Of a stretch of DNA of 64,000 bases, positions 1,701 through 48,811 are shown piece after piece. How positions within the stretch are numbered: position 1 is the stretch's first letter; each line of letters begins with the position of its first letter. The stretch comes from Azolla caroliniana. Lineage: Eukaryota > Plantae > Polypodiophyta. Below the pieces are notes generated by a model that worked only from the letters and a program-made list of their open reading frames with translations, was not told where the DNA came from and made no database searches. A program made the translations under genes and the position numbers. The DNA is taken from positions 5,456,001-5,520,000 of the forward strand of contig JBHGNT010000010.1 of assembly GCA_043228905.1 (NCBI GenBank). Reading direction: 5' to 3'.

Positions 1701-2407
1701 ATACGTTGCATCGCCGATTGGTTCACATGTTGTTGAACTTGGATTGAAGACTTCGGCATTAAAGAGTATGCAAGATAGGGGTTGTAGCTCAAATGGTAGA
1801 GCGCTCGTTTCGCATTTGAGAGGTACCGGATCCCATACCCCCTTTTCCAATTGTGTTATCTTGATACGTTGCATATTTGATTGTTTCACGTGTTGTTAAA
1901 TCGTGGATTAAAGACCTCAAAATTAAAGAGCATACAAGACACAACATGTAGCTCAAATGGTAGAGCATTTCCTTCGCATGCAAGAGGTATGGGGATCGAT
2001 ACACCACTTCTCCGATTATGTTACCCCACTTCACATTGGAGCTTAATAATCATGGATTCCAACATATGGAATCCATCTAATATGCATGTTGGAGCATACT
2101 GGCCTTGGACATATCGGATCCTCCTTTCAATTTCGTGAATAAAACAAGTTCTCCAATTGTGTTCTCTTGATACGTTGCATCTTTGATTGTGTCATGTGTT
2201 GTTCAACCTAAGTTGAAGACATCGAAAACTATGCAAGATAGGGGATGTACAACTCAAATGGTAGAGCGCTCGCTTCGCATGCGATAGGTATGGGGATGGA
2301 TACCCCACTTCTCCAATTGTATTATTAGAATACACTGCATTTTTTATTGCTTCACATGTTGTTGAACCATGGATTGAAGAAAACAACATTAAACAGCATG
2401 CAAGACA

Positions 2408-2480
2408 GGGGATGTAGCTCAAATGGTAGAGTGCTTGCTTCGCATGCAAGAGGTACGGGAATCGATACCCCGCTTCTCCA
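2408..2480 (+). tRNA. tRNA-Ala(CGC)-like array copy, probably a pseudogene
   Basis: 73 nt with G3:U70 and anticodon stem CTTGC/GCAAG. Has a U6:U67 mismatch and G53 changed to A. Confidence 0.6.
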
Positions 2481-3020
2481 ATTGTGTTACCCCACTTCGC
2501 ATTGGAGCATTTTGATCATGGACATATAAGATTCATCTTATATGTATATTGGAGCATAATGATCTTCGACATATTGTATCCTCCTTTCATTTTCATAAAT
2601 ATAACTGCTTCTTCAATTGTGCGTGGATCGATACCCTGCTTCTCCAATTGTGTTACCCCACTTCACATTGGAGCATAATGATCATTGACATATTTGATCC
2701 ATCTTATATGCATATTGGAGCATAATGAGCATGGACATATTGGATAGTCCTTTCCGTTTACATGAATATAACCACTTCATCAATTGTGTTATCTTGATAT
2801 GTTGCATCACCGATTGCTTCACGTATTGTTGAACTTGGATTGAAGAATTCGGCATTATAGAGTATGAAAGATAGGGGATGTAGCTGAAATGGTAAAGCGC
2901 TTGCTTCGTGAGAGGTATGGGGACCGATACCCCCTATTCCATTTGTGTTATCTTGATACATTGCGTCTTCGATTACTTCACGTGTTGTTGAACTATGGAT
3001 TGAAGGCCTCAACACTAATA

Positions 3021-3093
3021 GGAGATGTAGCTCAAATGGTAGAACGCTTGCTTCGCATGCAAGAGGTACAGGGATCGATACCCTGCTTCTCCA
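3021..3093 (+). tRNA. tRNA-Ala(CGC)-like array copy
   Basis: Cloverleaf with T-stem CAGGG/CCCTG. G3 is changed to A, which removes the G3:U70 alanine identity pair. Confidence 0.55.
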
Positions 3094-3817
3094 ATTGTGT
3101 TACCCCACATCGCATTCGAGCATAATGATCATGGAGTTCGACATATTGCATCCATCTTATATGCATATTGGAGCATAATCAACATGGACATATCGGATCC
3201 ACCATGGAGTCCGACATATTGCATCCATCTTATATGCATATTGGAGCATAATCAACATGGACATATCGGATCCACCTTTCCATTTCATGAATATAACTGT
3301 TTCTCCAATTGTGTTACCTTGATATGTTGCCTCTACGATTGCTTCACGTGTTGTTGAACCTGAATTGGAGACATCGGCATTAAAGAGTATGCAAGATAGG
3401 GGATGTAGTTGAAATGGTAGAGCGCTCTCTTCGCATGTGAGAGGTACGGGGACCGATTACACCCTATGTTATCTTGATATGTTGCATCTCTAATTGAAGA
3501 CCTCAACATTAAAGAGCATACAAGATAGGGAATGTCGCTCAAGTGGTAGAATGCTTGCTTTGCATGCAAGAGGTACGGGATCGATACACCGCTTCTCAAA
3601 CTGTGTTACCCCACTTCGCATTGGAGCATAATGATCATGGAGTCCGACACATCAAATCCATCTTATATGCATTGCCAGCATGGACTTATCAGATCCTCCT
3701 TTAAATTTCATGATTATAACCGCTTCTCCAATTGTGTTATCTTGGTAGGTTGCATCTATGATTGTTTCACGTGTTGTTAAACCTCAGTTGGTGACATTGG
3801 CACAACTATGCAAGATA

Positions 3818-3890
3818 GGGGATGTAGCTCAAATGGTAGAGTGCTTGCTTCGCATGCAAGAGGTATGGGGATCGATACCCCACTTCTCCA
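3818..3890 (+). tRNA. tRNA-Ala(CGC)-like array copy, near intact
   Basis: All stems pair except U6:U67. T-stem is TGGGG/CCCCA. TTTT at 3897-3900 could act as a Pol III terminator. Confidence 0.65.
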
Positions 3891-5721
3891 ATTGTATTTT
3901 CTTGATACATTGTGTTTTCAATTGCTTCACATGTTGTTGAACCATGGATTGAAGACCTCAACATTTAAGAACATGCAAGACAGGGAATGTAGCTCAAATC
4001 GTAGAGCGCTTGCTTCATATGCGGGAGGTACGGGGATGGATACCCCGCTTCTCCAATTGTGTTACCAAACTTCGCATGCATTGGAGCATAATGATCATGG
4101 ACATATTGGATCCATTTTATATGCATATTGGAGCATAATGACCTTGGAGAATTGGATCCTCCTTTCATTTTCATGAATATAACCGCTTCTTCAATTGTGC
4201 GAGATCGATACCCCTCTTCTCCAATTGTGTTACGCCACTTCGCATTGGAGCATTTTGATCATGGACATATTGGATCCATTTTATATGCATATTGGAGGAT
4301 AATGACCTTGGACATATTGGATCCTCCTTTCATTTTCATGAAGATAACGCTTCTTCAATTGTGCAGGATCGATACCCCGCTTCTCCAATTGTGTTACCCC
4401 ACTTCGCATTGGAGCATAATGATCATCGACATATCCGATCCATCTTATATGCATACTGGATCATAATGACCATGGACATATTGGATCCTCCTTTCATTTT
4501 CATGAATATAACCACTTCTTCCATCGTGTTATCTTGATGCGTTGCATCGCCGATTGCTTCACGTGTTGTTGAACTTGGATTGAAGACTTCGACATTAAAG
4601 AGTATGCAAGATAGGGGTTGTAGATCAAATGGTAGAGCGCTCGTTTCGTATTTGAGAGGTACCGGGACCCATACCCCCCTTTCCCAATCGTGTTATCTCT
4701 AACTGTTTCACGTGGATTGAAGATCTTAACATTAAATAGTATACAAGATAGGGGTTGTAGCTAAATGGTAGAGTGCTTGCTTTGCATGTGATAGGTTTGG
4801 GGATCCATACCCCCCTTCTCCAATTGTGTTACCCCACTTCACATTGGAGCATAATGATCATGGAGTCAAACATATTGAATCCATCTTATATGCCTATTGG
4901 AACATAGTGACCATGGACATATCAGATCCTCCTTTCAATTTCATGAATATAACCACTTCGAGAATTGTGTTATCTTGATACGTTGCGTTCCTGATTGCTT
5001 AACGTGTTGTTGAACCTAAGTTGAAGATATCGCCAATAAAAACTATTCAAAACAAGGGATGTAGCTCAAATGGTAGAGTGCTCGCTTCACATGTGATCAG
5101 CGTTGTTTACGTACGCGTATTTAACGTATCAATACGTATAATACCTCATACTTTGTATAGTACGTACTATATGTCAATGTTGTTCAGTCAAATATCATGT
5201 AAATTTTTCTAATACGGTATTTAACGTACTTTTAAAACAATAGGTATAATACGTATTTATAAAAAAAATGTATGCAAAACCCTAAAATAAAGAAAAGAAA
5301 AAAACGATTTTAGTGAAGAAGGAAGAAAGAAGAAGAAGAAAACGAAGGAAGACGAACAAGAAGAGGAAGAAGAGGAAGAACAAGAACAAGAAGACCAAGA
5401 AGAGGAAGAAGAAGAAGAAGAAAGAGGACGAGGAATCAATCGAAACCTTGGTTTGAAGACAATCAATTGTCTTCATACAAAGGCAACAAACAAAGATCTA
5501 CACTATATAGAAGACAAATTTTTATTGGGCCCAATTCTTGTGAGTGTGAGGTATGTTTAACCTTAATATGCATATGCTTGGATAGTAGTTTTCTAACTTT
5601 AATATGCAATGAAGTCACATTTTCTTTTTGGTTTTCATTCACTAGCATAGAGAAAGATGGACCTACTAGCCTAAAAACAATAGTGTAGTCTTGCTTATTG
5701 ATTTCATGTTTGATTAGAATG

Positions 5722-6331
5722 CTTGGTTAGTTTATTAGTAATTGATTACCCAAAGAGCAGCCATTGAAAGGGGAGGCTAATTCAATTAAGCTTCAATTAG
5801 TTTCAGTTAGAGTATTTCACATGGCATTAATAGTTTGTGCAACTCAATCATGTATTTCGCTAAATTGGTTTTAAATTATGTTTTTCACTTGCCATGAACA
5901 TGAAGGTTAATATGAAAGTGCAGCCCAAGGATATGAGTAGCTATGGTAGGCAAGAATACACACAGAAAAATGTATCTACAAACATCTATTCTTTTGAAAA
6001 TGTTGTAGTCTTCTCTTTTCAGTTCTAGTCTTAGTATGAATTTAAGTTCTAGTCTTGGTTAGTTTATTAGTAATTGAGTACCTAAAGAGCAGCCATTGGA
6101 AGGGGAGGCTAATTCAATTAAGCTTCAATTAGTTTCAGTTAGAGTATTTCACATGGCATTCATAGCTTGTGCAGCTCAATCATGTATTTCGTTTAATTGG
6201 TTTTAAATTATGTTTTCACTAGCCATGAACATGAAGGTTAATATGAAAGTGCAACCCAAGGATATGAGTAGCTATGGTAGGCAAGAATACACACAGAAAA
6301 ATGTATCTACAAACATCTATTCTTTTGAAAA
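5722..6331 (+). repeat. ~280-bp direct repeat pair inside the hAT element (~5722-6000 and ~6054-6331)
   Basis: CTTGGTTAGTTTATTAGTAATTGA...AAACATCTATTCTTTTGAAAA occurs twice. Confidence 0.85.
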
Positions 6332-6439
6332 TCTATTGAAAACTATATAAGATGTAGTATGTATCACGTATTAATAGACCCACTAATTTATGTGGAAAAA
6401 TTGTACTTGACACTTGAATGTTATATCTTATTTTGTGAA

Positions 6440-7388
6440 TTGCATGAATATCTGAATGGTACAGGGACATTTAGCTATGAATTAGCACATGAGGAGAGAT
6501 CTATGATGATGCCAGTCACTTGGTGGGAAAATTTTGGTGGAAGAACTCCAAAGCTCCAAGCATTAGCTATTCGCATATTATCCCAAGTAAGTGTCAAGTG
6601 TTGAAAAAATGATCAATTTTATAAGTTTTGAAATAGCTCACTTTTGTGTACTACATTTTATTTCATATTTTACTTTTTATTAGGATTTCTCTTCTGGGGC
6701 AGCAGAAAGTAATTGGAATGTACATGCTCTCACACATATGATAAATAGAAACAAACTAAAGGTAGCCCAACTTGAACGATTGGTATATGTGCGAGAGAAC
6801 TTACGGCTAGTTCGCAAGTTTGAGACTGTGAATGCATCTCCAATGCAGGTATTTTTTTATTCATTCTTTTTATAATTTATATTCCTCAATATTCTTAAGT
6901 ACTAATAACTAGTTTCTGCCATCGACACACTAGTTTGTGATACTTAGAAGTTAAAGCTTTTATAAACTTGTTTGCAGGTGAATCCAAATGAGATAGATGT
7001 CTCTAAGACTCCTGATATTCCATCTATTAGCCATGAAAATGATATGGATAGAGAATTCTATGAAACTTATTTTCAAGAAACAATGAGCTTGAGAAGAAGG
7101 ACAAGGAGCATGACAAGATCACATATGACAACATCAAGTGATGGAGTCCCTACTAATCGAATATGAAGGCAAAGGCCAAGAAGAGATGATGAGCAGTCTT
7201 CTTGTAATAGGAGAATAACACGATCAAGTACATTTGCTTCTTTACCACTAGATCATCAAGATAATGTCAATGCAATAGAAGAAGCAGTTCATACTAATTA
7301 CGATGATCTTACGAACGAAGAACTAGTGTTGATGTCATCAACTAACACAGAATCCGATGATGAAGATGGTGATGAGGACCAGATCTAA
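6440..7388 (+). pseudogene. hAT transposase C-terminal (dimerization domain) remnant with two GT-AG introns
   Basis: PVTWWENFGGRTPKLQALAIRILSQ, then intron 6587-6683, then DFSSGAAESNWNVHALTHMINRNKLKVAQLERLVYVRENLRL, then intron 6849-6977, then an acidic tail with a premature stop at 7164-7166. Confidence 0.85.
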
Positions 7389-7619
7389 AGACAAATACTT
7401 CTAATTTCTATACGTTATTATTAAGCTCAATAACCTTATGTTACTTGTCTTTGATCTAAGCTCCATTTTGATACATTGGACATAGTTAGAGTTGTATCAA
7501 TATCGTATTTTATTAGAGTAAAATTTTCATCATGTGGTTCTTTTTTACCTTCATTTACTTTCATGAACCTTGAAATATTTGATGTTATGTCTTGTTAAGG
7601 TTTTTGCTCTAAATTTTGT

Positions 7620-8250
7620 TGTTAGAATGCATTCTATTTCTTTGACCAAATGCAATGTGAGGGTATCTCAATGAATGGAATCACATTGGTGGCTCTATTG
7701 AAAGCTTGTTCCAATGTAGGATCTCTAGCCAAGTGTAAAGAAATTCATGTCGAGGTTGCAAAGAAAGGGTTAGAAATAGAAGCTCTTGTGGTGCATTAAA
7801 TGAAGCACAAGAAGTGTTTGAGAGAAATTTGGTTCGAGATATAGTTTCATGGAGATCACTCATGGTGGGAATCGGGATATTCTAAACATGGACATAATAA
7901 GGACTCAAGTGGCATTGGATTGTTTTGAAAAGATGAGGAAACATTGTTGCCTCTTGCCACATGCATTTTCATTGTCTTGTGGGTTGAAAGCTTGTGGAAG
8001 CTTGAGAGATAGACAAAAAGACCGAGAAATACATGCCGACATCGTCAAAATAGGCTTTGAAAAAGATGTCCTTGTTGAAAACACAATAGTCAACATGTAT
8101 GTGAATTGTGGGTTATTGTCGACTGCCCACTACTTGTTTAACACTCTAGTGGTGTGAGATGTGGTTTCACTAAACTCATTGATGGTAAGAAATGCCAAAC
8201 AAGGGCATAACAAGGAGCCTATTTTTTGTTTAGAGGAGATGGTTTCAAAA
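7620..8250 (+). pseudogene. Captured, decayed PLS-class pentatricopeptide repeat (PPR) gene fragment
   Basis: ALDCFEKMRK...FSLSCGLKACGSLRDRQKDREIHADIVKIGFEKDVLVENTIVNMYVNCG matches P-L-S motif consensus. Upstream frames give GITLVALLKACS and EAQEVFERNLVRDIVSW. Contains stops and frameshifts. Confidence 0.85.
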
Positions 8251-8511
8251 GGGGGGTGTACATATCCAACGACTACAGATAGTGTGTGCTTTTTACAATA
8301 TTACAAATATTTTCTTGAAATGTAAATAATTTTCAAATTCTAGAAGTATTTTACGTAATATACGTAAAATACGTATTTTGCGTATTTTATAAGTACTTAA
8401 CATATTACAAAACGTATTTAACGTATTTTTTAATTGGGAGGTATTATACGCGTATTAATACGTTATATATGTATGGTATCCGTACCGTACCTAACGTACC
8501 TAACAACCATG

Positions 8512-10211
8512 CATGCGATAGGTATGGGGATGGATACCCAACTTCTCCAATTGTATTCTCTTCATACATTGCATCTCCGATTGCTTCTCGTGTTGTTGAA
8601 ACATGGATTGAGAACATCAACATTAAAGAGCATGCAAGACAAGGGATGTAGCCAAAATGGTAGAGTGGTTCCTTCGCATGCGAAATGTATAAGGATCGTG
8701 AACCTGCTTCTCCAATTGTGTTACCCCACTTCACATTGGAGCATAATGATCATGGACATTTCAGATCCATCTTATATGCATATTGGAGCATAATCACCAT
8801 GGACAGATGGGATCCTCCTTCCATTTTCATGAATAAATCTGCTTCTTCATTTGGGCGGGGATCGATACCCCGCTTCTCCAATTGTGTTACCCCACATCAC
8901 ATTGGAGCATAATGATTGTCGACATATCAGATCCATCTTATATGCATATTGGAGCATAGTAACCACGGACATATGAGATCCTCCTTTCAAATTCATGAAT
9001 ATAACCACTTCTCCAATGGTGTTATCTTGATACATTGCGTCTATGATTTCTTCACGTATTATTGAACCTGGATTAAAGACCTTAGCATTAACGAGCATGC
9101 ACGATGGGGGATGTATCTCAAATGGTACACCTCTCGCTTCACATGTGAGAGGACCTCAACATTAATGAGTATGCAAGACAGGGGATGTAGCTCAAATGGT
9201 CGAGTGCTTGCTTCGCATGCGAGAGGTACGGGGATCGATACCCCGCTTCTCCAATTGTGTTACCCAACTTCGCATTGGAGCATTATGATCATGCACATAT
9301 CGGATCCATCTCATATGCTTAATGATATTGGACATATCGGATCCTCGTTTCATTTTCATGAATACAACCGCTTCTTCAATTTTGCGGGGATCGGTACCCC
9401 GCTTCTCCAATTGTGTTACCCCACTTCGCATTGGAGCATAAGGATCATCGGCATATCAGATCCATCTTATATTATGCATATTGGAGCATAATAACTATGG
9501 ACATATTGGATCTTCCTTTCATTTTCATGAATATAACCGCTTCGTCAATTGTGTTATCTTGATATGTTGCATCATCGATTGCAGACTTCAGCATTAAAGT
9601 GTATGCAAGATATGAGATGTAGCTCAAATGGTAGAGCGCTTGCTTCGCATGTGAGAGGTACGGGGCCCGATACCCCCCTTTTCCAATTGTGTTATCTTGA
9701 TACGTTGCGTTTCTGATTGCTTCACGTGTTGTTTAACCGTGGATTCAAGACCTCAACATGAAAGAGCATACAAGACAGGGGATATAGTTCAAATGGTAGC
9801 ATGCTTGCTTCGCATGCGAGAGGCACGGGGATCAATATCCCGCTTCTCCAATTATGTTATCCTATTTCACATTGGAGCATAATGATCATGGAGTCCGACA
9901 TATCGAATCTATCTTATATACATATTAGTGCATATTGACTATGGATATGGACATATCGGATCCTCTTGTCAATTTCATGAATATAACGGTTTCTCCAAGT
10001 GTGTTATGTCGATACGTTGCGTCTCCGAGATTGCGTCACGTGCTGTTGAACCTGAATTGAAGAAATCGGTTAATAATTAAAAAATTATGCAAGACAAGGG
10101 ATGTAGCTCAAATGGTAGAGCGCTCGCTTCTCATGCGAGAGGTATAGGGATAGATACCCCACTTCTCCAATTGTATTTTCTGGGTACGTTGCATATCCAT
10201 TTGCTTCACGT
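8512..10211 (+). repeat. tRNA-Ala-derived tandem array, block 2
   Basis: 3' half of the split unit, then units at ~8642, 9107 (partial), 9181, 9613, 9778 and 10097. Stubs lie near 8856 and 9385. Confidence 0.95.
9181..9253 (+). tRNA. tRNA-Ala(CGC)-like array copy, near intact
   Basis: Full cloverleaf with a perfect T-stem CGGGG/CCCCG and T-loop ATCGATA as in plant tRNA-Ala. Has U6:U67 and A21 changed to C. Confidence 0.65.
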
Positions 10212-13200
10212 TGTCGCGGTAATCCGAGCGTACGTATCGGATTTGGGTGGGACCACCGGGGTCTTGGACCGGGGAGAGATGGGTTTCCGAAAGGTCGAGT
10301 TCTCCACAACCGGATATGCCGTCAAGACTCCAGCCTGAATGGTTCCGGATGCGACCCGGAGACAACCGATCTAGGCGCGTCCCGAAATACGATCGGGACA
10401 CGTACAGGACGAGCACACGCGTACACGGTACGCACACCCGTTGGCCCTTCGCGAGTCGTATGTACATAAGGCCCTATAGATATTTGTGTATATATATTTA
10501 TACGCATAATAATAAATACACGGACTACAGTCCGGTTCACTGTGCTCGCATGCACGCATGCACGCACGCACACAAACACACATATACTTGGGAAGAGCAA
10601 AACCCCGTCACTCAAACCGAACGCAGACAAAGAGGGGCCCGGGATAGCTCTAAGAGACTCGATACTCAAAAACACCCGACACACACATCCGTGGAGATGA
10701 ACAGAACACCAACGCTTTGCACAAGAAACGCACACAGAAGTTTAAATATATATATATTCGTACAAGACAACGAAATACAACTCTGACCTCGAGCCGGACT
10801 AAGGTCTAAACGGACACGAAGACTCAACCCACACAACGACAAAGAAAAAGAAGAAGAAGACTTAGACGAAACCCTAAAGAAGTAAGAAGTAAAGAGAAAG
10901 TTACCATACCTTGGACCTAAGTGGTATACCCTCCTAACTCAAAATGGACAACCCTTTTACGAGAGACCCCTCCCTCCTTTTATAGTCTAAGGAGGGAAGG
11001 AAGTTACAATGTGGGATAAATTTCCCCTTTTATTTCATACACATTTTCGAATGTACATGTGCACACGGTGCACATTGCCGACCCTTTTTATCTCACCCGG
11101 TTTACTCATTGTGGTCGGTAATCTTCATGACATCCGCCCCCACCAAACCGCACATTCACCGGTATGTACCACAACAAAGTGAAGTGTGAGGGATTCTGGC
11201 CGCTGTGAACAACCGATCTTCCGTAATCCGCACCCTGGTTGCCGTGTCGACCTCCGCCGATCCCAAAACGTCCGCTTCGGTTCCTTCCTTGCGCTTGCCT
11301 CTCCGTAGGCTCGTTCCGACCTCTAGGTGGGTAGTTTGCCACGACCCCTTTCGTACACGTGCTTGCACCTTTGGTCCTTTGATCGACCATATGTACGCCC
11401 TTCGTTTTGTTGTTTTCCTTCTCCGCTCCGAGCTCATCCGGCCTCTCCACCCGGTTAGCCGGTCCCGGTTTCCGGATTCACCCCTTCTCCGGTCCGGTAG
11501 ATATCCCGGATGTCGGTCACGACCCGTCCTTCGTTTTGCGTGGTGTGGATTTCATTCCTCTCGACTGATTGTCGAAGGTTGGACCTTGCCTGCGCCCGTT
11601 TTGATCAACCTTGTCGCACGCCAAACCTCCTGTGCATGCTACTCGTCCCTTGCCCGACCAGATCACGCATCTTCACTTCAACAGTATATCCAGTGTCCTC
11701 CGTGCCCGAGGAACACCCCGTAATGGCCCGCTCGGCCCGCTTGGCCCCCTCGCCCCATCTGCTTGTCACCTCGGGCTTACGCTTGCCACACTAGTCGTTG
11801 CCACTTTGACCAAGACGCCGATGTCTTCAATACATGTGCGGAGGATCCCTCTTTGGCCTCTGATGTCCTTCAGGGCCACCGACCCTTGCAGTCTGTTCCA
11901 CGCTTGACTGTGTGCCATCCTGCCTTTGACTTGCCTTGTGAGAGCCTCTGTCCTCCTTCGCTCGGCACCGCCTGTGCCGAACTCCGGTCTTTCCCCGTGC
12001 TCATACCTCGGCCCTCGATGGCCACACGCACGTCCTTCGTTTCACTTCCAGGTGTGCCCTTTCCGGCTCGGCACACCGCTCTTCACTTGGGTTTCCTTGG
12101 TAGCCTTAGGCATTGCTACCCGTACGGGGATAAACCTTGTCCGTTTTGGCCTACCTGGCCTCCGTTGTCCCCGCGATGCCTTGGTTGCTCGGTGCCTCCG
12201 ATGATACCGCCTTCGTCCCCTCGCCTCCACCTTCCATCTCCTCGGTCTTATGTTGCCACGGCGGCCGAACTGTCGAGGTCTCCGGAACCAGTGTGGAGGA
12301 TCCCTCTCGGGCCTTCTGTCCTTTGAGGCCTACGACCCGCACACCTTGCATGTCCTTCATTTGTTCTTCCGACCCTGCCGATCGGGTCTGTTTCTGGTTT
12401 GTGGCCGCATCGCCGTCCTTATACCTCTTTCCGCTCTTCGGTTCTTGCTTTCTCAGATCTCGTTCACCTGCCGCCACCGTCCATCTCTCTAGGTCTCACG
12501 TTGGCTCTCGAGCCGACTGCCAGAGTCTCCGGATCGGTGTGAGGATCGCCCTATCCACACTTCACCAAATCTTGGTATCCCGTTTACTTGCCGCCACCGT
12601 CCATCTCTCTAGGTCTCACGCCGGCTCTCGGGCCAACTGCCAGAGTCTCCGGATTGGCGCGAGGATCGCCATAGGATCGCCCTTCTAACCCACGCTCCGT
12701 CCTCCGCTTTCATCACTTTGTATTGGCCGTGACCTCTGCGTCCTCGCCGCCACTTTTCCGTCTCTTAGGTCTTCCGTTGGTTGTTGGATGCAACCGCCTA
12801 AGTCTCAGGAACGAGTGTGGAGGACCCATACTTCGGTCAACCGCCTTTACCGTTTCTCCCCATCGTCGTTGATCCCCTCCGTGCTCGCTACTCGTCCCTT
12901 ACAGAACCATATTGCACGCTTCTCGTTCCGCTTTTCATTGTGCACTTCTTCGGTTCAGCACACATTTTCCCCGACTCCCGAGTCAGTCCTCTCTGGTTTG
13001 GTGTCCTCCGCATCCTTCAATAACGTTGTTCCGCTATGAGGAACACCTTCTTCACCCAATTGGCCCACGTGGCCTCTGTTGTTCTCCGCATTTCGGCCCG
13101 GTTTCGGACGAACGATCCATGCTCGGATCGTGCTCCATCTGAATCAAAATGCCGACCGGATCGACTCCTGGTTAGGCCGACATCCAACTACGCTCCTTTC

Positions 13201-14402: not shown

Positions 14403-14417
14403 CCTACCTTCCGCCCT

Positions 14418-14435
14418 TTCACGTCGGGTTCACCA
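14418..14435 (-). promoter_or_regulatory. Primer-binding site complementary to the 3' end of tRNA-Trp
   Basis: The plus strand reads TTCACGTCGGGTTCACCA, matching the 3' 18 nt of plant cytosolic tRNA-Trp including CCA (recalled sequence). It lies 4 nt from the LTR. Confidence 0.85.
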
Positions 14436-14778: not shown

Positions 14779-14809
<31 letters not shown>

Positions 14810-36000: not shown

Positions 36001-37923
36001 AAGGTTTCTTTGAGTTGTTGCACGCGTACCACTAGTTCCCCATGTTGTTGTTGCGTTTGTTGCTTTTCTAAGGAGATTTGTTGAAGGTCCCCCAACAACC
36101 GTTGATTTTCTTGTTCCAAAGCAAGGAACTTCTCGTTCAAGCATTGCAACTCTGAGAGAACGGATTGATATTCTTCAGTGCTAACAGTGGCCATAGTATG
36201 AGAGAAAAGAGGAATAAGAGATTAGTATGAAGGGAGGGAGAAGTAAGAAGATAAATGAAGAGAAGGAAGGAGAGGCAAATCAATTCAAATTGTCAGGAGT
36301 AGTACTAAGATAGAGAAGTATTGTCAGGAACAGTACTAAAACATAGAAGGAATTAGTACTAAAAGATGAGGATTAGTACTAAGGGAGGTGTAGAATTCTT
36401 GAGAGAAGGAAAGAGAGAGAGAGAGAGAGAGAGAATGAGGATAGCAAAAGATATATATTATGTTAAGGGAATATACAATAGTAGCTAGGAGGCTTAAGAC
36501 TGGCGTTGAACCGATTTGGTTCGAAATAATGCCTTGTGCCTCCTTTTATAGTGTTCTCAGGAGTACTCCTAAAGTTTCTAGAAAGTTCTAGAGAAATTTG
36601 TAATATACATCAATTTTCTATAGTAAAACTTAAATGAAAATAATATTCTTTGTATTACAACATATAGTCTAATGGTCAAGAGCTCGACCCACGTAACATA
36701 AGGTCATGGGTTCGAGTCCTGCCATATCATGACACCCGATCATCTTCTTGAAGTCCGTGATGACTTCGTACATCTCAATGGAATTTACCTGAACGACCCG
36801 GTCCTCGTTAAGATCCTCTTCGGCTATCTTCTCGATCTCCCCGAGGGTGTCGTCGAAGCTGCCTTTAAGCGTCCTTCGACTTGTTTCTTCTCCCGGCCAC
36901 CGATGTTGGTTATGGTACAACCTCCATTAACAGAGGGCCAAAAACTACTGCCTACTGTACAAGTGTGAGGTTTCGTCCCGTTGTCTGGACGATCGCGACC
37001 CCACACCTTGATAGTCCTCTCTAAAAATCCTCTCGGCTCTCGCCGCTGAGAGAATCTCAATTTCTTTCATGATTCAGCCTCACTATTAAGAAAGTTAGAT
37101 GGAGTGTTTACCATCCTGGCTCTTTACCCTCGCGTATGCTGAACTGTTGTCCAACACTTTAGTCCCCATCTGTGCCACCGTGATGTAAGGTTCACCGAGT
37201 ATAATCGGATGCGATGACTAGTCCTATACAAAGAAGTGTTGGTCTATTTCAACATCGTCAACTATTACCCGGACATTTGGGCATGCCCCGTGAAGCTCTT
37301 CCGTGGTGCAAGTTGCCACACGAATCTTCCAGTCTTAATCGACCACTTACCCTTCTTATAGATGTCCATGGACATTAGGTTAATCTCCCATCCATGGTTG
37401 ATTAATGTCACCACCGGCTCTTTAACATTAGATTTCCATCGTCGCTCTGGCCCAGTGTCGGTTCATATAGTGGCTATTCGGAAACTCCTCTTCCATCACC
37501 ACCTCTTGAATTTGGGCCGCCTTCACTTCGACCGGCTTCTCCGGCTCTAGCTCTGCCGAGAGCCACTTCCTTTTCATCAGGTCCACGATGGAATTGTGGG
37601 ATTCCTTCTTCGCGATTCCTAGCACCTCTCTCAACAAGAGCTCCACCTTGTTGTCGAGGATCCTTTCTTCCAGGACCTTCTGCAGATCCATCATCCTCTC
37701 AATCTTCGAGCTCAACCGGAAGCCCAGAATCTTCACCTTTCCTTTCTCTTGTCGGTTAGTGAAACTAACATCCTCCTTCCTTGACCCATTTTGGGTTTCG
37801 TACTGATTGGAGGGGCCTACTCCTCCTGACCCTCTTGTCTTCAACCAGAACCTCGTATTTTTGGCACGCGGCTTCCATGAAGCCGGTTTTCTCTTTGACC
37901 AGATCGTCCCATCCGGTGCCCTC

Positions 37924-39089
37924 TTGGACGCATGGAAAGCCCTCTTGGACCCGCCTCTCCGCGCGGTCCACCTCTTCCTTCCTTAGCCTTACCCCCGATA
38001 GGCCTTCTTGTACAAGCGGCCAAATTCCGGTTTTGCTTCCAGATACGGTGCCCTTCTCTCCGCCTACTCGAATCCCTACCGACACCAAGTAGTGAATGGC
38101 CTCGGTGTTTCGGGCCACGGATTCCTCCATTATCCTCTTCATGCCTCCTCATCTGGTGCTCACCTCGAGGGGCCTCCGCGTGTCGCACGCGTGTACCCAA
38201 ATCGGTGCACTCTCTCTGGACGTGGCCCACGGCATCACACCACATGCATCGTTGGTCATTCGGAAGCCTCCTGTCATGCGACTAGCACCTGCCATCTCTC
38301 TGGGCCTGTGCGATCTAGAGATCGCGCACCATCTTGGGTAGTTCCTCTATTGTCGCGCCACCATATGGTCCTGCAACCATGTTGGTTGGAGTCGCCCCCG
38401 ATTTGAGCCATCATCTTGTCTCCTCCGGCCGTGCCGGAATCAGTTCCTCCAGCTTCTTCCCAGCCACCAGGCCCGTTGCCAATGGACCTGCATTATTCCA
38501 ATCGCGTTGGACGCATGGAAAGCCCTCTTGGACCCGCCTCTCCGCGCGGTCCACCTCTTCCTTCCTTAGCCTTACCCCCGATAGGCCTTCTTGTACAAGC
38601 GGCCAAATTCCGGTTTTGCTTCCAGATACGGTGCCCTTCTCTCCGCCTACTCGAATCCCTACCGACACCAAGTAGTGAATGGCCTCGGTGTTTCGGGCCA
38701 CGGATTCCTCCATTATCCTCTTCATGCCTCCTCATCTGGTGCTCACCTCGAGGGGCCTCCGCGTGTCGCACGCGTGTACCCAAATCGGTGCACTCTCTCT
38801 GGACGTGGCCCACGGCATCACACCACATGCATCGTTGGTCATTCGGAAGCCTCCTGTCATGCGACTAGCACCTGCCATCTCTCTGGGCCTGTGCGATCTA
38901 GAGATCGCGCACCATCTTGGGTAGTTCCTCTATTGTCGCGCCACCATATGGTCCTGCAACCATGTTGGTTGGAGTCGCCCCCGATTTGAGCCATCATCTT
39001 GTCTCCTCCGGCCGTGCCGGAATCAGTTCCTCCAGCTTCTTCCCAGCCACCAGGCCCGTTGCCAATGGACCTGCATTATTCCAATCGCG
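37924..39089. repeat. 583-bp tandem duplication in gag
   Basis: 37924-38506 and 38507-39089 look identical, and ORF-track peptides repeat with an offset of 583. Confidence 0.95.
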
Positions 39090-40695
39090 TTGTTTTTTGA
39101 AATGGACGCAAAATCTTTTAACCATGGCCCAGTCGGTCGTGAGCCCTTCATCCTTCTCCAAGAGGAGACCCACCTTCTCGCAATTAAGCAAGTCGACCAA
39201 CTTCTCAAACATGAGAACCTTCCTCGTATCGAGCACGGTCCAGTCTAGTGTCGAGAGTTGTGCACCAACTTCTCGAATTCCTGAAGAAGCGCTGACATAT
39301 TCAGGCCTTTGACAGGGCGCTTGACCCAATCCATAAATTCTTTCTTCGTCAGCCGGAGCAAGTCGTCCGAGCCGTACCTTTCGAGGAGGCGCCCCTCGAA
39401 TTCTGCCCAGTTACGGCAATCTTCTTGCCCCTCGAGCACCTCGGCATGGATGCTAGGCATAACAACTCGAGGGAAGCAGACCAGCCATCTATCCACTGGA
39501 ATATCCCTCATCATCATTTCGGGCCGGTAAGCCTCCATGTAGCTTGTCACGTGCCATTGAACCGACTAATCGCGCCGACTATAACCTCGATGGTTCAGTC
39601 GAGGGTGTTCGTGCCCTCAAGAGCGCTCAACAAGCAGTCGACAGCCACCGCCATTGCCTCCGCAAGTTCACTTCCCCTCATTTTCTAACTCATTTTCCGC
39701 CTTGTTCACATCAGGTTCACCAATGATGTCGCGAAAATCTACGCCTGCATGTCGGATAAGGCGGGAACACGGGGGTCTTGGATTAGGCAGTAAAGGGGGA
39801 AGAACAATGTGAGAAGATTGACAAGAGAAAGAGCTAGACCAAGACAAGATTCATCAAGCTAATTCCATTATAGGGCACGAAAGCCATAGTACGATTTAAA
39901 ACTGTGGTCGTATCGGCCGGCCTCAAGCTCAACTAGAAGAAAACCTAACCGAATAGGAAGAAGAAGAAGAAGAAGAACTAAACCCAAATCAAGGGAAGAA
40001 AATGAGAGAGAGTGGAAACTAGAACCAAAACCCTAAAACGAAAATAGGGATGAGAGAAAGAAGAACTAAAATTATAAGGGTCTACCTCTAATGACAAAAT
40101 GGTGACGCGTACGCAACACACAAAGAGCAATCGGATACAATGAAACGAAATAGATTATGCAAAGAAGAGTACAACCGAACCTCCCCGGTATCAGAGCTAC
40201 GCGCTCTCAAAACACACACACACACACATAAACTCAGGACGGTGAACCTCTAGTCGGGAGCTCACGAGCTTCCTGCACAAGCAAAGACTTCACCTTCTTC
40301 CTAGACTCAGTATAGAGCACTAGACAGAGAGAGAAGAGAGAGAGTTCGGAACTCAAACCAACAGCACTTCATCCTCCCAAATCGTGGATCCCTCAAACAA
40401 TCTCAAACCTCCCCTTTTATAGAGCAAGGGGAGGTTGTTACATCACCATAAAGCCATTCGCTTTCGGGCAAAGATTTCCGGGTTGAATTTCCTCCATCGG
40501 ATATTATTCTTATTCTCTGTGCGTGTTGCCTTAAAATACCTATCGAATCACTCCTACCTAGTATTCCTCAATACTTAAACTAACACTAACTTATTTACAC
40601 ATGATTGTACAAAGACATTTCGAGTGCATCAATGCGCGCCCCGTTCATGTGTTCTCAGATACCTTTTCTACTAGTAGCCGGAATTCCTCACAGCA

Positions 40696-41675
40696 ACGTG
40701 TTGTTGAATCATGGATTGAAGATCTCAACATTAAAGATGTATAACACAGGGGATGTAGCTCAAATGGTAGAGCGCTTGCTTTGCATGCAAGAGGTACAGG
40801 GATCAATACCCCGCTTCTCCAATTGTGTCACCCCACTTCCCATTGGATCATAATGATCATGGATATATTGGATCCATCTTATGTGCATAATATTAATGGA
40901 GCATAATGACCTTCGACATATCGGATCCTCCTTTCATTTTCATAAATATAACCGCTTCTTCAATTGTGAGGGGATTGATATCCACTTCTCCAATTGTGTT
41001 ACCCCACTTCTCATTGGAGCATAATGATCATCGACATATCGGATCCATCTTACATGCATATTGAAGCATAATGACCATGGACATATTGGATCTTCCTTTC
41101 ATTTTCATGGATATAACTACTTCTTCAATTGTGTTATCTTGATACATTCAATCACCGATTGCTTCACGTTTTGTTAAACTTGGATGAAGACTTTGGCCTT
41201 AAAGAGTATGCAAGATAAGGGATGTAACTCAAATGGTACAACGCTCGCTTCACATGTGAGAGGTACGAGAACCAATACCCCCCTTTTCCAATTGTGTTAA
41301 CTTGATATGTTGCGCCTTCGATTGTTTCACGTGTTGTTGAACCGTGGATTGAAGACCCCAACATTTACGAGCACACAAGATAGGGGATGTAGCTCAAATG
41401 GTAGAGTGCTTGCTTCGCATGCGAGAGGTATGGGGATCGATACCCCGCGTCTCCAATTGTGTTATCCCACATTGGAGCGTAATGATGATGGAGTCCGACA
41501 TATCGAATCCATCTTACATACATAGTGACCATGGACATATCAGATTCCCCTTACAATTTCATGAATATAACGGTTTCTCCAAGTGTGTTATGTTGATACG
41601 TTGCGTCTCTAATTGCTTCACGAATTGTTGAACCTAAATTGAAGACATCGGCATTAAAAAACTATGCAAGACTAG
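40696..41675 (+). repeat. tRNA-Ala-derived tandem array, block 4
   Basis: Units at 40749, 41218 and 41383, a stub near 40968, and a next unit lost at the junction with the Copia. Confidence 0.93.
41383..41455 (+). tRNA. tRNA-Ala(CGC), best candidate for a functional copy
   Basis: All four stems pair when G:U is allowed: GGGGATG/CGTCTCC, GCTC/GAGT, CTTGC/GCGAG and TGGGG/CCCCG. Has G3:U70, A73 and an upstream CAA, but no adjacent T4 terminator. Confidence 0.7.
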
Positions 41676-43335
41676 GTTCACACACTAGACTAGGTTGAGC
41701 TTGATTCTCAACACGCCCCCTCAAGCTCAACTTTGGTCAGCTACTTCGGTTGATGTCCGCTTCAGCTCGTATCCGGTTTTCGCTTGTACTGCCCCTCAAG
41801 CTTGGCAAGTCCGGGACCATCAATCCAAGGTCTAGCAGGAATTGCCAAAGCTTGTCGGCTCCTAGGGCTTTGGTGAAGATGTCAGTTGTCTCAAGATTCG
41901 TAGTGATATGTTGAAGGTCGACATCGCCAGCCTGAACGCGCTCTTGAATGAAGTGATAGTGCACTTCGATATGCTTCGTGCGTGCGTGGAACACGGGGTT
42001 CCGAGCCAGATAAATATTGATCATGTTGTCGAAGTAAAGGGGAATTGGATCTTTGATGGGAAAGCCCAGATCCTTCAATATCCTCTTAAGCCATATGGCT
42101 TCAGATGCAGCCACCGCTACACCCCTGTATTTGGCCTATGTGCTCGAAAGAGTGACAGTTGGTTGCTTCTTGCTACTTCAGGATATGGCTCCACTTCCGA
42201 GGGAGAAGACGAAACCAAAGGTTGATCGTCAGTCGGCTTTGTAGCCTGGCCAGTCGGCATCTGTGTACCCCTCAAGTTGAATTGGTGTGGCCGACTTATA
42301 GAGAATGCCATAGTCCATCATTCCACTCACGTATCGTAGCACTCTCTTAGCACAATCAAAATGGATATCTCGTGGCATTTTCATGAACTGGCTACAAAGG
42401 CCAACCGGATAGCTCAAGTCTGGTCGAGTGATCATGAGGTAGATAAGACTACCGATCAGTTGTCGATACTGAGTCAACTCACACTTTGTGGTGCTAGAAT
42501 TGGCATCTAGTTTGAGGTTTCGGTCGAGAGGTGTTGCCACAAACTTGCACTCAGTCATCTCGAACTTGTATAACATGTTGAGAATGTAGTGTCGTTGGGA
42601 GATCATAATCCCAGCTGGAGTCTGAATTACCTCGATGCCAAGGAAGTACTGGAGCTCTTTCATGTCCGTCATCTTGAATTTGTTGGAAAGGAGGTATTTG
42701 ACCTTGTTGATGTCGACTAGATGCTCACCTCCAATGACCAGATCATCCACGTACAGGATGATGATGATCAGACTTTCGGAATCACTTCTTACATAGAGAG
42801 AATTATCGGATTTTGACATTCAGGAGCCAATTCGATGAAGATATTGTGTTATCTTCGAGTGCCAAGCACGTGGTGCTTGCTTAAGGACGTAGAGAGGCTT
42901 CTTGGGTCGGCAAATGGCTTTCGAATGAATGTTGGATTTGAAGCCGGGTGGTTGTATCATGTACACCTCCTCTTCTGATTCACCTTGAAGAAAGGCATTC
43001 TTGACGTCCATCTGGTGGAGGTGCCACCCTTTCGCCGTTGCAAGTGCGATCACGATCCACACAGACGTCATCTTTGCCACTAGGGCAAAGGTCTATTCAT
43101 AATCGACTCCATGTGTTTGTGTGTAGCTCTTTGCTACGAGTCGAGGTTTGTAGCGGTTGACAGAATTGTCGGCATTATACTTCACTTTGTATATCCATCT
43201 GCATCCGATTGCCTTCTTCTGGTGTGAGTGTGGGACAAGATCCCATGTCTCGTTCTTGCTGAGAGCTTGCATCTCCTCGTTTATCGCTTCGACCCATTGT
43301 GGATCTTTAGCGGCTTCGGTAATGCTCTCCTATTC

Positions 43336-44850
43336 TCAAACTGCTACCACCTTTATCATAAAGGCATAATGGTATGCCATATAATCTTTGTAGCCGAATC
43401 GGCTAATAGGATTCTTCTCACGGGTGGAGCGACGAAGGTTTTCGTATGTCGATGTAAGTGCCTTCTTAACTCTGGGTGACCTCAAAAGAGGCATATCAAA
43501 CCCATTGAACTCACTATCGAGTGAGTGAGTCGATTCGTTGCCGGTGTCTTCATATTCCAGCTTTTTGGCTTTCCCTTTGTCCATCTTTGGACTTGGCCGA
43601 CATGTGCTTTGATTTCTTGGAGGTTCTTGTGGTCCGCTCAATCTGGTTGAGATAGGACTCTCCTCGGTTATTGACCTTAGTTGATCATCGTCTGTGTTGT
43701 CGAGGTCATTCGTAGATGATTCAGGAGGAATCCGCTCGGGTTTGTACCGTGATTTTGATTCGTCAAAGATGACATCCCGACTTCCACGAACCTTCCGAGT
43801 AGAGGGGTTATAGCACTTGTACCCCTTTTGCTCCAGTGAGTATCCTACAAGGATACATTTCTCCAACTTCGGGTCGAGCTTTTGTCGCTTCTTGTTGGGG
43901 ATGTGCACGTATGCAATGGAGCCGAATATCCGAACATGTGACAGATACAGCTTCTTTCCGAAAAACTTCTTGTGCGGAGTAAGTTCTTGCACACCCGATG
44001 TCGTACACCGATTCATGAGGTATACGGCCGTGTTAGCCGCTTTTGCCCAGTACAACTTCGGCACGTGTTTTTCGTTCATCATGGCCCATGCTACTTCAAG
44101 GATGTGCCGATTCTTTCGTTCGGCCACTCCGTTTTGTTGCGGTGTGTGTCGGCAAGTGAATGCTCGTCGAATTCCTTCCTTTTGAAGATATGTTGTGAAC
44201 GCATCAAAGAAGTATTCCATTCCTCTGTCTAACCGAAGACATCGTACATGATGCCCAGTTGTCTTTTCGACTTCACTTTTGAATTTTTGGAAGTGTGTAA
44301 ACACTTCACTCTTCATCCTCATGGGAAAGATCCATGTGTATCTAGAGAAGTCGTCGATGAAGGTAACATAGTACTGACATCCTCCGAACGTAGCCGTATG
44401 TGCCAGTCCCCACACATCCGAGTGGACTACGTCCAATAGGCCTTTGCTCACGTTCCTCTCCTTCACGAACGGGTGCCGATGTTGCTTGCCTAATTGGCAA
44501 GCTTCACATACTCCTTCAATCTCTTTCTCTTTGATGGTTAGGAGACCGATGACGACTCCTTTTGATTGCATCGCCTTGAGTTTGTTGAGATTGATATGGC
44601 CGATTCTTTTATGCCATAGCTCTATGTCGGTGTCGGATTTGAGGCCCTTTGCATACATGGCCGATTTCACCTCGTTTGACTCGAGGATAAACATTCTACC
44701 TTCCCTTCGACCCCGAGCGATGAGTCGGCCTTCCTTCTCGATGAAGCAACCACCTTGGTTGAATCGAACTTGCATCCCTTGCTCCACTATTTGGCCGACC
44801 GAGACAAAATTCTTCGTTATGGTGGTACACATAATACATTTTTGATACAA
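43336..44850 (-). pseudogene. Copia GAG-pre-integrase and integrase
   Basis: LWHKRIGH...CEACQLGKQ, HSDVWG and TPQQNGVAERKNRHILE. Confidence 0.9.
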
Positions 44851-45778
44851 GTTTGTTCGCCGTCTTACCCGAATGGGACATTGCCAATATGTCGAGTAGG
44901 ATGAGTGGTGTCATCTCCGGTCTCGACATAACCGGGTCGATCCGGCTCTCATAAGTCTCGGAACCATTCTTGACGAGATGTAATATGGTTCAAAGCACCG
45001 GAGTCGACGAACCATACATCTTCCAGATTGGAGGCATTAGTCGAAGTAGAGGCCGACATAGAATTTGCTCTATGTCTCATCACAAACATTCCGCCAAGGT
45101 CTTCATAATCAGAGTTAGTGGCATAATTTGTGAGTTACCGGCTTGTGGAAGCCAACTCGCACTTCTTTTTCCGGCACTCTTCTTCATGATGGCCGATTTT
45201 TCCGCAATATCCGCATTCGATTGATTTTTGTCGACTCGAACCGGAATGGAAGCTCCCCCTTCTTCCGAAGGTTCCTCAATGGCTTCCGTCTTGTTGCCGA
45301 AATTGGGAGTTGTTCTCGTAAGTCGAACCTCCTTCGCCGCCTCGTCCTTGGCCGAAGCGGCCTCTTGCTCGGCCGCGTCCTCTTCCTCCATTCTAATGCG
45401 TGTAGAGAATGTGGCCTTCCGAGCTATTGCTCCTTGTTCGAACATTATTCTCATCAACCAATAACATAGATTGAAAATCGAAGGAGGGTGGATTCTCCAG
45501 TGCTAGTACGGCGGTCCGCATCGCGCTGAATCGTGGTGCAAGGCCGCCAAGGCATATTTGCACCATTTCGTCATCCTTCACATTGACGCTTATTGAGCCG
45601 AGTGCATCACAAAGCTCCTTGATTGTCAAGGTGTAGCTTGTGATGGACATATCCCTTTGTTGGATATTGTTCAACTCTTGGCGGGATTGAAGCTTCCTCG
45701 CGGTCGTGTTGGCGGCGAAAATCTTTCATAGATTTTCCCACGCTTCCTTCGGCATCTCGACTTCTCGAATGTAACCGA

Positions 45779-46914
45779 TGTTGTGAAGTACGAAAGCTTC
45801 ACATTAAAAGTCTACAATAAGATAAATACGTAACTAAAATAACATTTGATAATGTTTTATATATAAAGATAATATTAACAACACATATGATAATATTATA
45901 TATATGTAAAGAAAAATAATATATATATATATATAGATAAATATATTATATTACACGAACAAGAGAGGACTTGAACCAATAACCCCACCCTATGACTCTC
46001 AAATCTTACCATTTATTCTATACTAGTAATATACATAAAATAAAGCATACTTTATATATACTTTATATTACATAAAGGATTTGCTTCATGATATAAAAAT
46101 AAAGTTGTATGTTGTATTCAATAGTATTTTGAGACTCGAAACCACAACCTCATACACCAAAGTCAACACACCTACCATTAGGCTAGGCCCTTTAAGATTA
46201 TATTTTCATGTTTATTGTTATTACATATATTGTTTCATACATAAAAGCTCAAATGAGCGAGATGTTTATCATGCATCACATGTAATGCATGAACGCCAAA
46301 TGGCGATCATGCATCACATGCATTTCATGCACTACATGCATGACTTGTACCCTCCAATGCATCATATGCATGGGGGCACCTATTTAAATGGTGAAAGAGA
46401 AGATCAAAAGGGAATAGGTATGAGATATCAATCAAATTATGTATTACATAAGAGATACCATAAAAATAGAGAAAGAAGGGAAGAAGTTTAACATAAACAT
46501 GGAGCTCTAGCTTGGCGGTTGTGGTGGTCAACTTTCAACAAGAGGGAGGCGGTTCGAGCCTTATCTTCATCAAAATATTGAAGTGAAGATTGTAGTGGTC
46601 TACGATCAAGAAAGAGAAGAGCGATTACCTTGTAAGACAAAGTTCGGAGATTCAACGACGTGCACAATCATTTTGTAACTCTTTCATGAAAATGATTATA
46701 AATTTCATACACTTTCTCATATAGTAGTTTATATCTTATCTTGTCTTATCTTATATTCCTTAAAAATCCTATTTTGTCATATCTTATTGATCTCTATTCA
46801 CTCCATTTCTACTCTTTCGTCTCTTCCGTCCATAATCCCAGTGATTCCTTCCTCACTTTCACGTTATCCTTTGTGTGCGCAACGCTACGCTTCTAGGCGA
46901 GCCACGTCACGACA
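45779..46914 (+). mobile_element. Solo LTR (AT-rich family) inserted in the Copia gag
   Basis: Termini TGTTGTGA...TCACGACA. 4-bp TSD CCGA/CCGA. Excision restores the gag frame HDHMLG/YIREVE. The + orientation is inferred only from CTATTTAAAT at ~46380. Confidence 0.85.
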
Positions 46915-47371
46915 CCGAGCATGTGGTCGTGAACACATGTCGTCAAGAAATACATTACTTGACTCGCCACTTGCTCCCATGTTGCATAGTCGGCGTCTTT
47001 CGGGTCGGGCCGGTTTTCTTGTGCTCCTTTGATGTAGCTCCAATAGCCTTGACCAACAAGGTATTGATGCATCTTGTACTCCCAAGATGCGAAACTGTTT
47101 CGGTCCAACTTCTCACTAGGGAGAGCGCTCCCCATTTGAGTATTCATGGTGTTGGATGTAGATTTCTTCTTTCTTCTTCTCTCTTGAATAGGAGTTATGT
47201 AGTCGCACTACGATAGCGAAGATCAAGCTCTTCTTGAACGTCGGCGTAGAGCTCAACACACACGGATGGGCGAGATCAAGCAACCAAACCGCTCTGCTAC
47301 CATATAAAGAATCGATGGTGATTCTTGTGCAACGGAATAGACTAGAGATATGTGTTGTGAGTGTGTATGTG

Positions 47372-47408
<37 letters not shown>

Positions 47409-47706
47409 CAAGATAGATAGATTTGAACAACAATAGAATACTCAAGACGATGTATATTACAAAGGAGATTAACCAAACTAATTACAAAGTAGGTGGAGAG
47501 TGCTTTATATAGTCACTCTCTCTGTTCATTAACTACCGAAGCTCATGGGTCATGGGGAATGTGAAAACTCATTAGTTATGTGTCATAGAATATGATTCTA
47601 GGACACATAGTTAATGTGTAGATAAGAGTGGTGACTTTTGACCTTTGAGTGCACACTCTCAAGGGTGTGTTCACACACTAGACTAGGTTGAGCTTGATTC
47701 TCAACA

Positions 47707-48811
47707 TTGTTGAACCATGGATTGAAGACTCAACATTAAAGAGCATGCAAGACAGGGAATGTAGCTCAAATGGTAGAGCGCTTGATTCGCATGCGAGAGG
47801 TACGAGGACCGATACCCCACTTCTCCAATTGTGTTACCCCACCTCGCATTAGAGCACAATGATCATGGACATATCGGATCCATCTTATATGCATATTGGA
47901 GCAAAATGACCATGGACATATCGAATCCTCCTTTCATTTTCATGAATATAACCGCTTCTTCAGTTGTGTTATCTTGATACGTTTCGTCTCCGATTGCTTC
48001 ACGTATTGTTGAACTTGGATTGAATACTTCGGCATTAAAGAGTGTGCAAGGTAGGCGTTGTAGCTCAAATGGTAGAGTGTTGGCTTAGCATGCATTATCT
48101 CTATATGTTGCATCTCTGATTGCTTCACATGTTGGTGAACCGTGGATTGAAGACCTTGGCATTAAAGAGTGGGCAATACATATGATATAGCTCAAACGGG
48201 TGCGCTTGGTTCGCATGTGAGAGGTATAGGGACCGATACCCCCCCTTTTCCAATTGTGTTATCTTGATACGTTGCGTCTCTGATTGCTTCACATGTTGTT
48301 GAACCAGGTATTGAAGACCTTAACATTAAAAACTATGGAAGAGAGGGGATGTAGCTCAAATGGTAGAGCACTTTCTTTGCATGTGAGAGGTACGGTGATC
48401 GTTACCCCACTTCTCCAATTGTGTTACCCCACTTCGCATTGGAGCATAATGATCATGGAGTCTGACATATCGAATCCATCTTATATGCATAGTGACCATG
48501 GACATATCGGATCCTCCTTTCAATTTCATGAATATAACTGCTTCTCCAATTGTGTTATCTTGATACGTTGTGTCTTCGATTGCTTCATGTGTTATTGAAC
48601 CTAGATTGAAGATATCGGCATTAAAAACTATGCAAGACAGGGGGTGTAGCTCAAATGGTAGAGCGCTTGCTTCGCATGCGAGAGGTATGGGGATCGATAC
48701 CCCACTTCTCCAATTGTGTTACCCCACTTTGCATTGGAGCATAATGACCATGGACATATTAGATCCATTGTTTATGCATTGGAGTATAATGACCAATGAC
48801 CATGGACATAT
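47707..48811 (+). repeat. tRNA-Ala-derived tandem array, block 5 (array end)
   Basis: Units at 47755, ~48054 (partial), ~48182, 48345 and 48640. Array similarity stops near 48811. Confidence 0.93.
48640..48712 (+). tRNA. tRNA-Ala(CGC)-like array copy, near intact
   Basis: Cloverleaf intact except U6:U67. T-stem is TGGGG/CCCCA. Confidence 0.62.

Follow-up and report, generated by a model that had tools for sequence, protein, structure and literature searches.

A probable fossil cluster of tandem tRNA-Ala genes, split by transposons, in the fern Azolla caroliniana

Land plants carry compact tRNA gene clusters of a single isotype, large tRNA-Ala arrays of maize among them (PMC13437025; PMC13578239; PMC11700998), and in the Ser-Tyr-Tyr array of Arabidopsis the copies are specific to their position (PMC13437025). 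Here, we analysed a 64,000-nt window of the Azolla caroliniana genome (assembly GCA_043228905.1, contig JBHGNT010000010.1, positions 5,456,001 to 5,520,000 of the forward strand), in which a tandem array of tRNA-Ala-like units with nested transposons occupies positions 1701-48811. We propose, with a probability of about 0.8, that this locus is a fossil tandem tRNA gene cluster, that is, a tRNA homocluster which has become pseudogenised and CG-methylated.

A search with a profile derived from the array units themselves recovered 31 tRNA-Ala-like units (28 full and three partial) together with seven stubs of tRNA 3′ ends, all on the plus strand and distributed over five blocks (Table 1), and no further unit in the rest of the window, the other ~55 kb being free of dispersed copies. 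Once the four insertions are removed, the array measures 8,298 bp. A first-pass annotation of this stretch had described about 30 co-oriented units and about seven stubs in five blocks, an array of about 8.3 kb, and three of four internal junctions that rejoin at target-site duplications (TSDs); its counts and coordinates hold, and the junctions are as described. Junctions 1 to 3 rejoin at TSDs of 8, 4 and 4 bp, in each of which the two copies differ by a single C/T or G/A change, while the fourth (the copia element at 41672-47706) has a truncated long terminal repeat (LTR) and no TSD, a deletion having removed most of the left LTR and a C unit. A homocluster comprises at least five tRNA genes of one isotype within 5 kb; here, six tRNA-Ala units at Rfam level lie within 2241-4822, and block 1 holds 13 units, although ARAGORN alone calls only two tRNAs in the stretch of block 1 concerned. 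Over the whole array, ARAGORN calls six units and 14 pass the Rfam tRNA cut-off.

The 165-bp monomer joins some 86 bp of 5′ flank to a complete 73-nt tRNA, whose consensus has the anticodon CGC, a G3:U70 pair, both promoter boxes (A and B) intact and a mismatch at U6:U67; a CAA motif at about -7 is kept in most units. Every second unit bears a spacer of about 135 bp, which is bounded by a direct repeat of about 20 bp made up of the tRNA 3′ end and the sequence that follows it. Spacerless and spacer-bearing units alternate strictly over 13 pairs, from 1778 to 41383, without exception, and there are two types of 5′ flank, 92% alike, one for each position in the dimer. The copies thus have the flank and the spacer in common, which amounts to the DNA-level duplication that characterizes homoclusters, and the stubs are shown to be tRNA 3′ ends carried along when the spacer was re-duplicated.

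It had also been claimed that four variants of the unit (A to D) recur as a higher-order repeat of about 1.1 kb. The four variants exist: the diagnostic motifs named for B, C and D are present, and in a tree of 24 units (seven partial or flank-deleted units were excluded) the variant labels are far more clustered than in shuffles (0/200). Only A is well supported, the five A-type units originally listed (1778, 2874, 4614, 9613 and 41218) being joined by 3399 (98/99); support for C is weak (45/80), and flank and tRNA sequence do not separate B from D, which differ mainly in the spacer. Adding units from public contigs splits A into a supported core plus 48181, and units 9107 and 16414 represent a fifth type, E. 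The regular 1.1-kb period, however, is absent. The dimers follow one another as AB CD AB AB CD AB CD ED AB CB CD ED AB (C)D (A)AB C; in the rebuilt array, successive A units are about 1096, 525, 1215, 1577, 2249 and 800 bp apart, and the spacing of 10-mers peaks at ~160, 620 and 1560 bp, with 1060 bp ranking only 18th. The robust period is firmly the dimer, and the higher order is irregular. Separately, the A units 1778 and 4614 (1701-1850 and 4537-4686) show a mutual Kimura two-parameter distance (K2P) of about 0.07, much below that of their neighbours, which suggests a later, short gene conversion.

The state of the tRNA sequences points to decay free of selection. At non-CG sites, tRNA bodies diverge from the consensus by 7.6% and flanks and spacers by 8.4% (p=0.33). 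CG transitions reach 21.6% against 3.1% at A/T sites, about a 7-fold difference, and this footprint of the CG-methylation type resembles that of the LTR pairs of the resident transposons. Among the 28 full units, the anticodon is CGC in 17 and mutated in 11, and 24 have at least two broken stem pairs. Doubly changed stem pairs number three against 3.3 expected, i.e. there is no real covariation, and a run of four Ts occurs within 30 nt downstream in only 4/28 units, leaving most without a terminator. Judging by these sequence patterns, the array appears to be pseudogenised and neutrally decaying, most likely without present function, and to have been silenced by CG methylation; the origin from a tRNA-Ala(CGC) gene and the loss of function proposed in the first-pass annotation are supported, as is its term 'methylated', in the sense of a sequence footprint. 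One truncated unit (48054-48093) carries the anticodon AGC, a change from CGC seen in this single copy.

The order of events can be read from divergence, the comparisons among retroelements resting on LTR pairs and junctions. Units of the same class differ by a K2P of 0.16-0.21, the LTR pairs of the Ty3/gypsy element G2 and the LTR element G1 by 0.123 and 0.105, and those of the nested elements by 0.059-0.065, from which it follows that amplification ended first, that G2 and G1 then inserted, and that the nested elements came last. This order stands at non-CG sites, where same-class units differ by 0.11-0.15 and LTR pairs by 0.07-0.095. The repeat unit is a whole tRNA-Ala(CGC) gene with its 5′ flank, which was presumably multiplied at the DNA level through slippage or unequal crossing-over, first as a monomer, then as a dimer and as a tetramer. 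The dimers diverged to AB, CD and ED and were recopied in irregular order, re-duplication of spacers giving rise to the 3′ stubs. The copies, probably silenced by CG methylation, then underwent unselected decay, fastest at CG. Homogenization was presumably over before the Ty3 insertions (non-CG divergence 0.11-0.15 for units against 0.07-0.095 for LTR pairs), and transposons younger than the array finally split it into blocks.

Several observations weigh against this reading. Only 77 bp separate the right end of the copia element at 1-1700 from the first unit downstream of it, which makes it probable that the array extends further left, past that element and outside the window. Four contigs of the European Nucleotide Archive (ENA), found with the translation of the non-coding repeat DNA as a mere proxy query, carry the array (L013 to L016), and one of them, L014, holds four tandem units that are mostly 80-87% like those of the window, with no exact match; this is a second version, which places the family either at a further locus or in a related species. 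The low copy number of the array is an estimate derived from four short contigs of low coverage. Stem pairing (82.9%) is marginally higher than in shuffled units (81.8%; 14/500). Finally, the U6:U67 mismatch, present in 27/28 copies, had to be dropped as proof of a defective founder, since the translations of tRNA-Ala genes on unrelated contigs, read back from their codons, imply the same mismatch, which other eukaryotes thus appear to share.

The first alternative, which we consider unlikely, is that a true satellite family derived from the tRNA has large homogenized arrays elsewhere in the genome, of which the present array would be an outlier. Its tandem, multi-level structure would fit, as would the probable leftward continuation and the second version in L014, and head-to-tail monomers with position-specific variants are indeed present; yet there is no regular, homogenized higher-order period, the order of units is irregular, and copies of one class are as far apart as stated above. 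Moreover, three of the four array contigs return to the window locus at 98-100%, which speaks for a low copy number: the unit at 10097 and its junction with G1 recur at 100% in L015 and L016, and L013 combines several stretches of the window, mostly at 98-100%, being either an allele with a rearranged order or a chimera of the assembly. These three are labelled with 1.3-1.5x coverage, like contigs carrying a nearby kinase exon (1.2-1.8x, in different samples), and an exact-pattern scan of metagenomes of the Joint Genome Institute (JGI) with the 22-nt junction motif gave no match. Exact-pattern scanning of viral contigs and a search of papers for the sequence were equally negative, and we found no description of this array family or of a comparable fern array in a limited searchable literature. 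The earlier description as a tRNA gene that became a satellite accordingly stands for the tandem amplification with flank at the DNA level and is not supported for a satellite in the usual sense, the array being small, unhomogenized and apparently low-copy (same-class K2P 0.16-0.21). As a separate observation, L013 (700-1009), having matched window positions 4457-4954, passes into a unit of type E (94-100% to 16300-16486), and non-array DNA begins immediately behind the 3′ end of its tRNA, as would be the case in a variant allele, a second locus or a chimera.

It is quite unlikely, in our view, that the cluster is partly functional and conditionally expressed, with a few live copies among dead ones, as in the Ser-Tyr-Tyr array of Arabidopsis. 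Both promoter boxes, G3:U70 and CGC are preserved in units 3818, 9181, 41383 and 48640, the only ones in which no more than one stem pair is broken; the upstream CAA is retained in most units, with four Ts at +6 in 3818, and silenced clusters can be reactivated (PMC13437025). However, with a mean divergence of 10.7% over 73 nt, a few copies with two to four changes are unsurprising, and neither conservation of the tRNA body above the flanks nor, in most copies, an oligo-T terminator just downstream is found. One to four copies at most could still be transcribed.

That LTR elements were guided just upstream of the tRNA-like units, by the RNA polymerase III (Pol III) complex or by chromatin as Ty1 and Ty3 are in yeast, the array having drawn insertions, is very unlikely, even though it looked strong at first sight. 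The four LTR junctions all lie in the 5′ flank, at -77, -53, -53 and -48; as the flank is about a third of the array, this would occur by chance in roughly 1% of cases (a post hoc figure), but for two of the four positions only one end is available. G1 and G2, which share only short terminal matches, are independent of each other and are ruled out as one duplicated insertion, and yet both inserted at an ACGT about 53 bp upstream of a unit. Elements of the Phygy lineage prefer NCGN targets and produce 4-bp TSDs (PMC6317226; PMC6911290), and 4-bp TSDs with a central CG are what G1 and G2 have. The best explanation for the shared site is hence that their lineage prefers NCGN and the flank offers ACGT, and, with such a preference, two elements would share a site class by chance with a probability of about 0.09-0.33, so that tRNA-directed targeting is largely explained away. 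Relatives of the G2 integrase (about 49% identical, from one ENA sample) have the TSDs ACGG and ACGT, and a probable CCGT beside two further LTR ends; no tRNA gene was present in their fetched flanks, and no intact LTR pair in L004, L011 and L012. The wider notion that fern LTR retrotransposons of both superfamilies were steered 50-80 bp upstream of tRNA promoters, four such events being recorded by the array while its boxes bound Pol III factors, receives very little credence from us. We know of no report of tRNA-gene-directed LTR integration in plants, although no systematic search for one was made.

Nor does the locus look like the transposon landing pad that had been suggested. Transposons make up 82% of 1701-48811, near the average of the Ceratopteris genome, which is 85.2% repetitive (PMC9477723), and the excess of insertions in the array (four to five, against four in transposons) is not significant (p 0.11-0.21 under a rough, age-weighted exposure model).

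Hardly any credibility is left to a tandem array of a tRNA-derived mobile element, either a short interspersed nuclear element (SINE), which the first-pass annotation had itself raised as a possible counter-reading, or a terminal-repeat retrotransposon in miniature (TRIM) of the Helenus/Cassandra type: Helenus LTRs do carry tRNA-like sequence and one family forms tandem arrays (PMC10886601), but both origins are ruled out on anatomy, since the units include untranscribed 5′ flank in place of a transcript 5′ start and a complete cloverleaf ending at the discriminator, the consensus has on neither strand a tail, TG...CA termini, or a canonical primer site or purine tract in place, and no unit has its own TSD or lies dispersed in the rest of the window.

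The insertions carry some features of their own. The LTR of the left copia element contains a 54-bp repeat (786-1232; 8.3 copies, 92% match). The hAT-like element carries a broken pentatricopeptide repeat (PPR) gene fragment at ~7600-8300, and remnants of a transposase-like C-terminal exon near 6400-6800. Inside G2, a 586-bp tandem duplication (37924-39092) is 100% identical while the G2 LTRs differ by 12%, so that the duplication either is very recent or arose in the assembly. The closest transposon proteins with a named source belong to Adiantum nelumboides (35-60%), and the named relatives of the G2 integrase are from Riccia and Ceratopteris (43-60%). A lineage of Ty3 elements whose TSDs are 4 bp long and centred on CG, and whose gag contains DUF4100, is present both here (10208-10211, 16525-16528) and on contigs L001-L003 of another organism (ENA sample ERZ25073694), and would carry Phygy-like NCGN targeting beyond Physcomitrella, from which the Phygy lineage was defined; G1 lacks a long pol open reading frame (ORF), and the likeness of G1 and G2 to Phygy concerns the type of TSD rather than a reference-based classification (PMC6317226; PMC6911290).

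To the right of the array end, short inverted matches at ~48880-49460 may be the ends of a small non-autonomous element. A decayed reading frame at ~54250-54720 resembles the zinc-binding region that follows the reverse transcriptases of long interspersed nuclear elements (LINEs). Two exons of a host protein kinase lie on the minus strand at 56420-57017, which we take to be the C-terminus of an ankyrin/ILK-type Raf-like kinase. With one exon as the query, ENA contigs L005-L009 matched this region at 88-91% DNA identity, introns included, which suggests that a paralogue, a homeologue or a related species is represented in public metagenomes. An old, heavily decayed copia element spans ~58580-62570, with a 185-bp tandem duplication (98%) at 62194-62566.

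Table 1. Array blocks, selected units and insertions in the window (positions in the window; letters after unit positions denote variants)
Feature	Position	Strand	Details
Ty1/copia 3′ end	1-1700	+	LTR 701-1700; right end 77 bp upstream of first unit
Array block 1	1701-5097	+	Units 1778 A, 1942 B, 2241 C, 2408 D, 2874 A, 3021 B, 3399 A, 3528 B, 3818 C, 3983 D, 4614 A, 4751 B, 5055 C (5′ half); stubs 2621, 4201, 4365
Best-preserved candidate gene	3818-3890	+	CGC anticodon, G3:U70, A/B boxes intact, CAA at -7, four Ts at +6; only U6:U67 unpaired
hAT-like DNA transposon	5098-8511		In anticodon arm of unit 5055; 8-bp TSD 5090-5097 / 8512-8519, one mismatch; PPR gene fragment aboard
Array block 2	8512-10211	+	3′ half of unit 5055; units 8642 D, 9107 E (partial), 9181 D, 9613 A, 9778 B, 10097 C; stubs 8856, 9385
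LTR element G1	10212-15392	-	LTRs 10212-11132, 14440-15392; K2P 0.105; 4-bp TSD ACGT/ACAT at -53 site of a unit's 5′ flank; no long pol ORF
Array block 3	15393-16528	+	Units 15408 B (5′ deleted), 15786 C, 15953 D, 16414 E; stub 16167
Ty3/gypsy element G2, Phygy-like	16529-40695	-	LTRs 16529-17348, 39727-40695; K2P 0.123; 4-bp TSD ATGT/ACGT at same -53 site as G1
Ty3 element nested in G2	19134-24268	-	5-bp TSD GTATC; LTR K2P 0.059; LTRs related to those of the 25579-36734 element
Chromodomain Ty3 element (Tcn1-like) nested in G2	25579-36734	-	5-bp TSD CCCGA; LTR K2P 0.060
Ty1/copia nested in chromodomain Ty3 element	27026-33060	-	Left LTR truncated; LTR K2P 0.065
Array block 4	40696-41671	+	Units 40749 D, 41218 A, 41383 B, then flank of deleted C unit; stub 40969
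Sole unit with all 21 stem pairs formed (G67)	41383-41455	+	No four-T run within 400 nt downstream
Ty1/copia element	41672-47706	-	~41 bp of left LTR remain; no TSD; right end 48 bp upstream of unit 47755; ~1.15 kb nested insert at about 45780-46936
Array block 5	47707-48811	+	Units 47755 D, 48054 A (5′ half), 48181 A-like, 48345 B, 48640 C; array end inside spacer

A fossil cluster of tRNA-Ala genes calls for no new mechanism, and the locus is probably neither a new satellite nor a special transposon landing pad. It had not been recognised as a described family, but its kind is already known from the tandem tRNA-Ala arrays of maize and the position-specific variants of the Ser-Tyr-Tyr array in Arabidopsis (PMC13437025). 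What it shows is the end state of a plant tRNA cluster, from amplification through silencing and neutral decay to break-up by transposons, with LTR pairs that put the events in order. Because the plant clusters described so far are mostly conserved ones of angiosperms, a dead case from a fern is a useful data point on the birth and death of such clusters; arrays of this sort can also inflate tRNA gene counts in fern genomes.

Among the systems compared, the Helenus/Cassandra TRIMs (PMC10886601) resemble the array in that a small-RNA-gene sequence resides in a repeat able to form tandem arrays, but the array lacks LTR termini, primer site and purine tract, and keeps the whole tRNA instead of the promoter boxes alone. 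With the Ser-Tyr-Tyr array of Arabidopsis (PMC13437025), it has in common a repeated multi-gene block, copies that group by their position in the block, and a heterochromatic setting; the Arabidopsis cluster, however, comprises two isotypes, is conserved and can be reactivated, whereas the Azolla array has one isotype, an irregular order of dimers and tetramers, and no sign of selection. Closest are the tRNA-Ala and tRNA-Ile homoclusters of Zea mays (PMC13437025; PMC11700998), which share with it a single isotype in tandem, common flanks and a similar copy number (28 tRNA-Ile genes in one maize cluster). While the maize flanks are described as highly uniform, the array reported here is 16-21% diverged, neutrally decaying and mostly devoid of terminators, and it differs further in its 3′ stubs, in the 39 kb of transposons that split it and in its host, which is not a seed plant.

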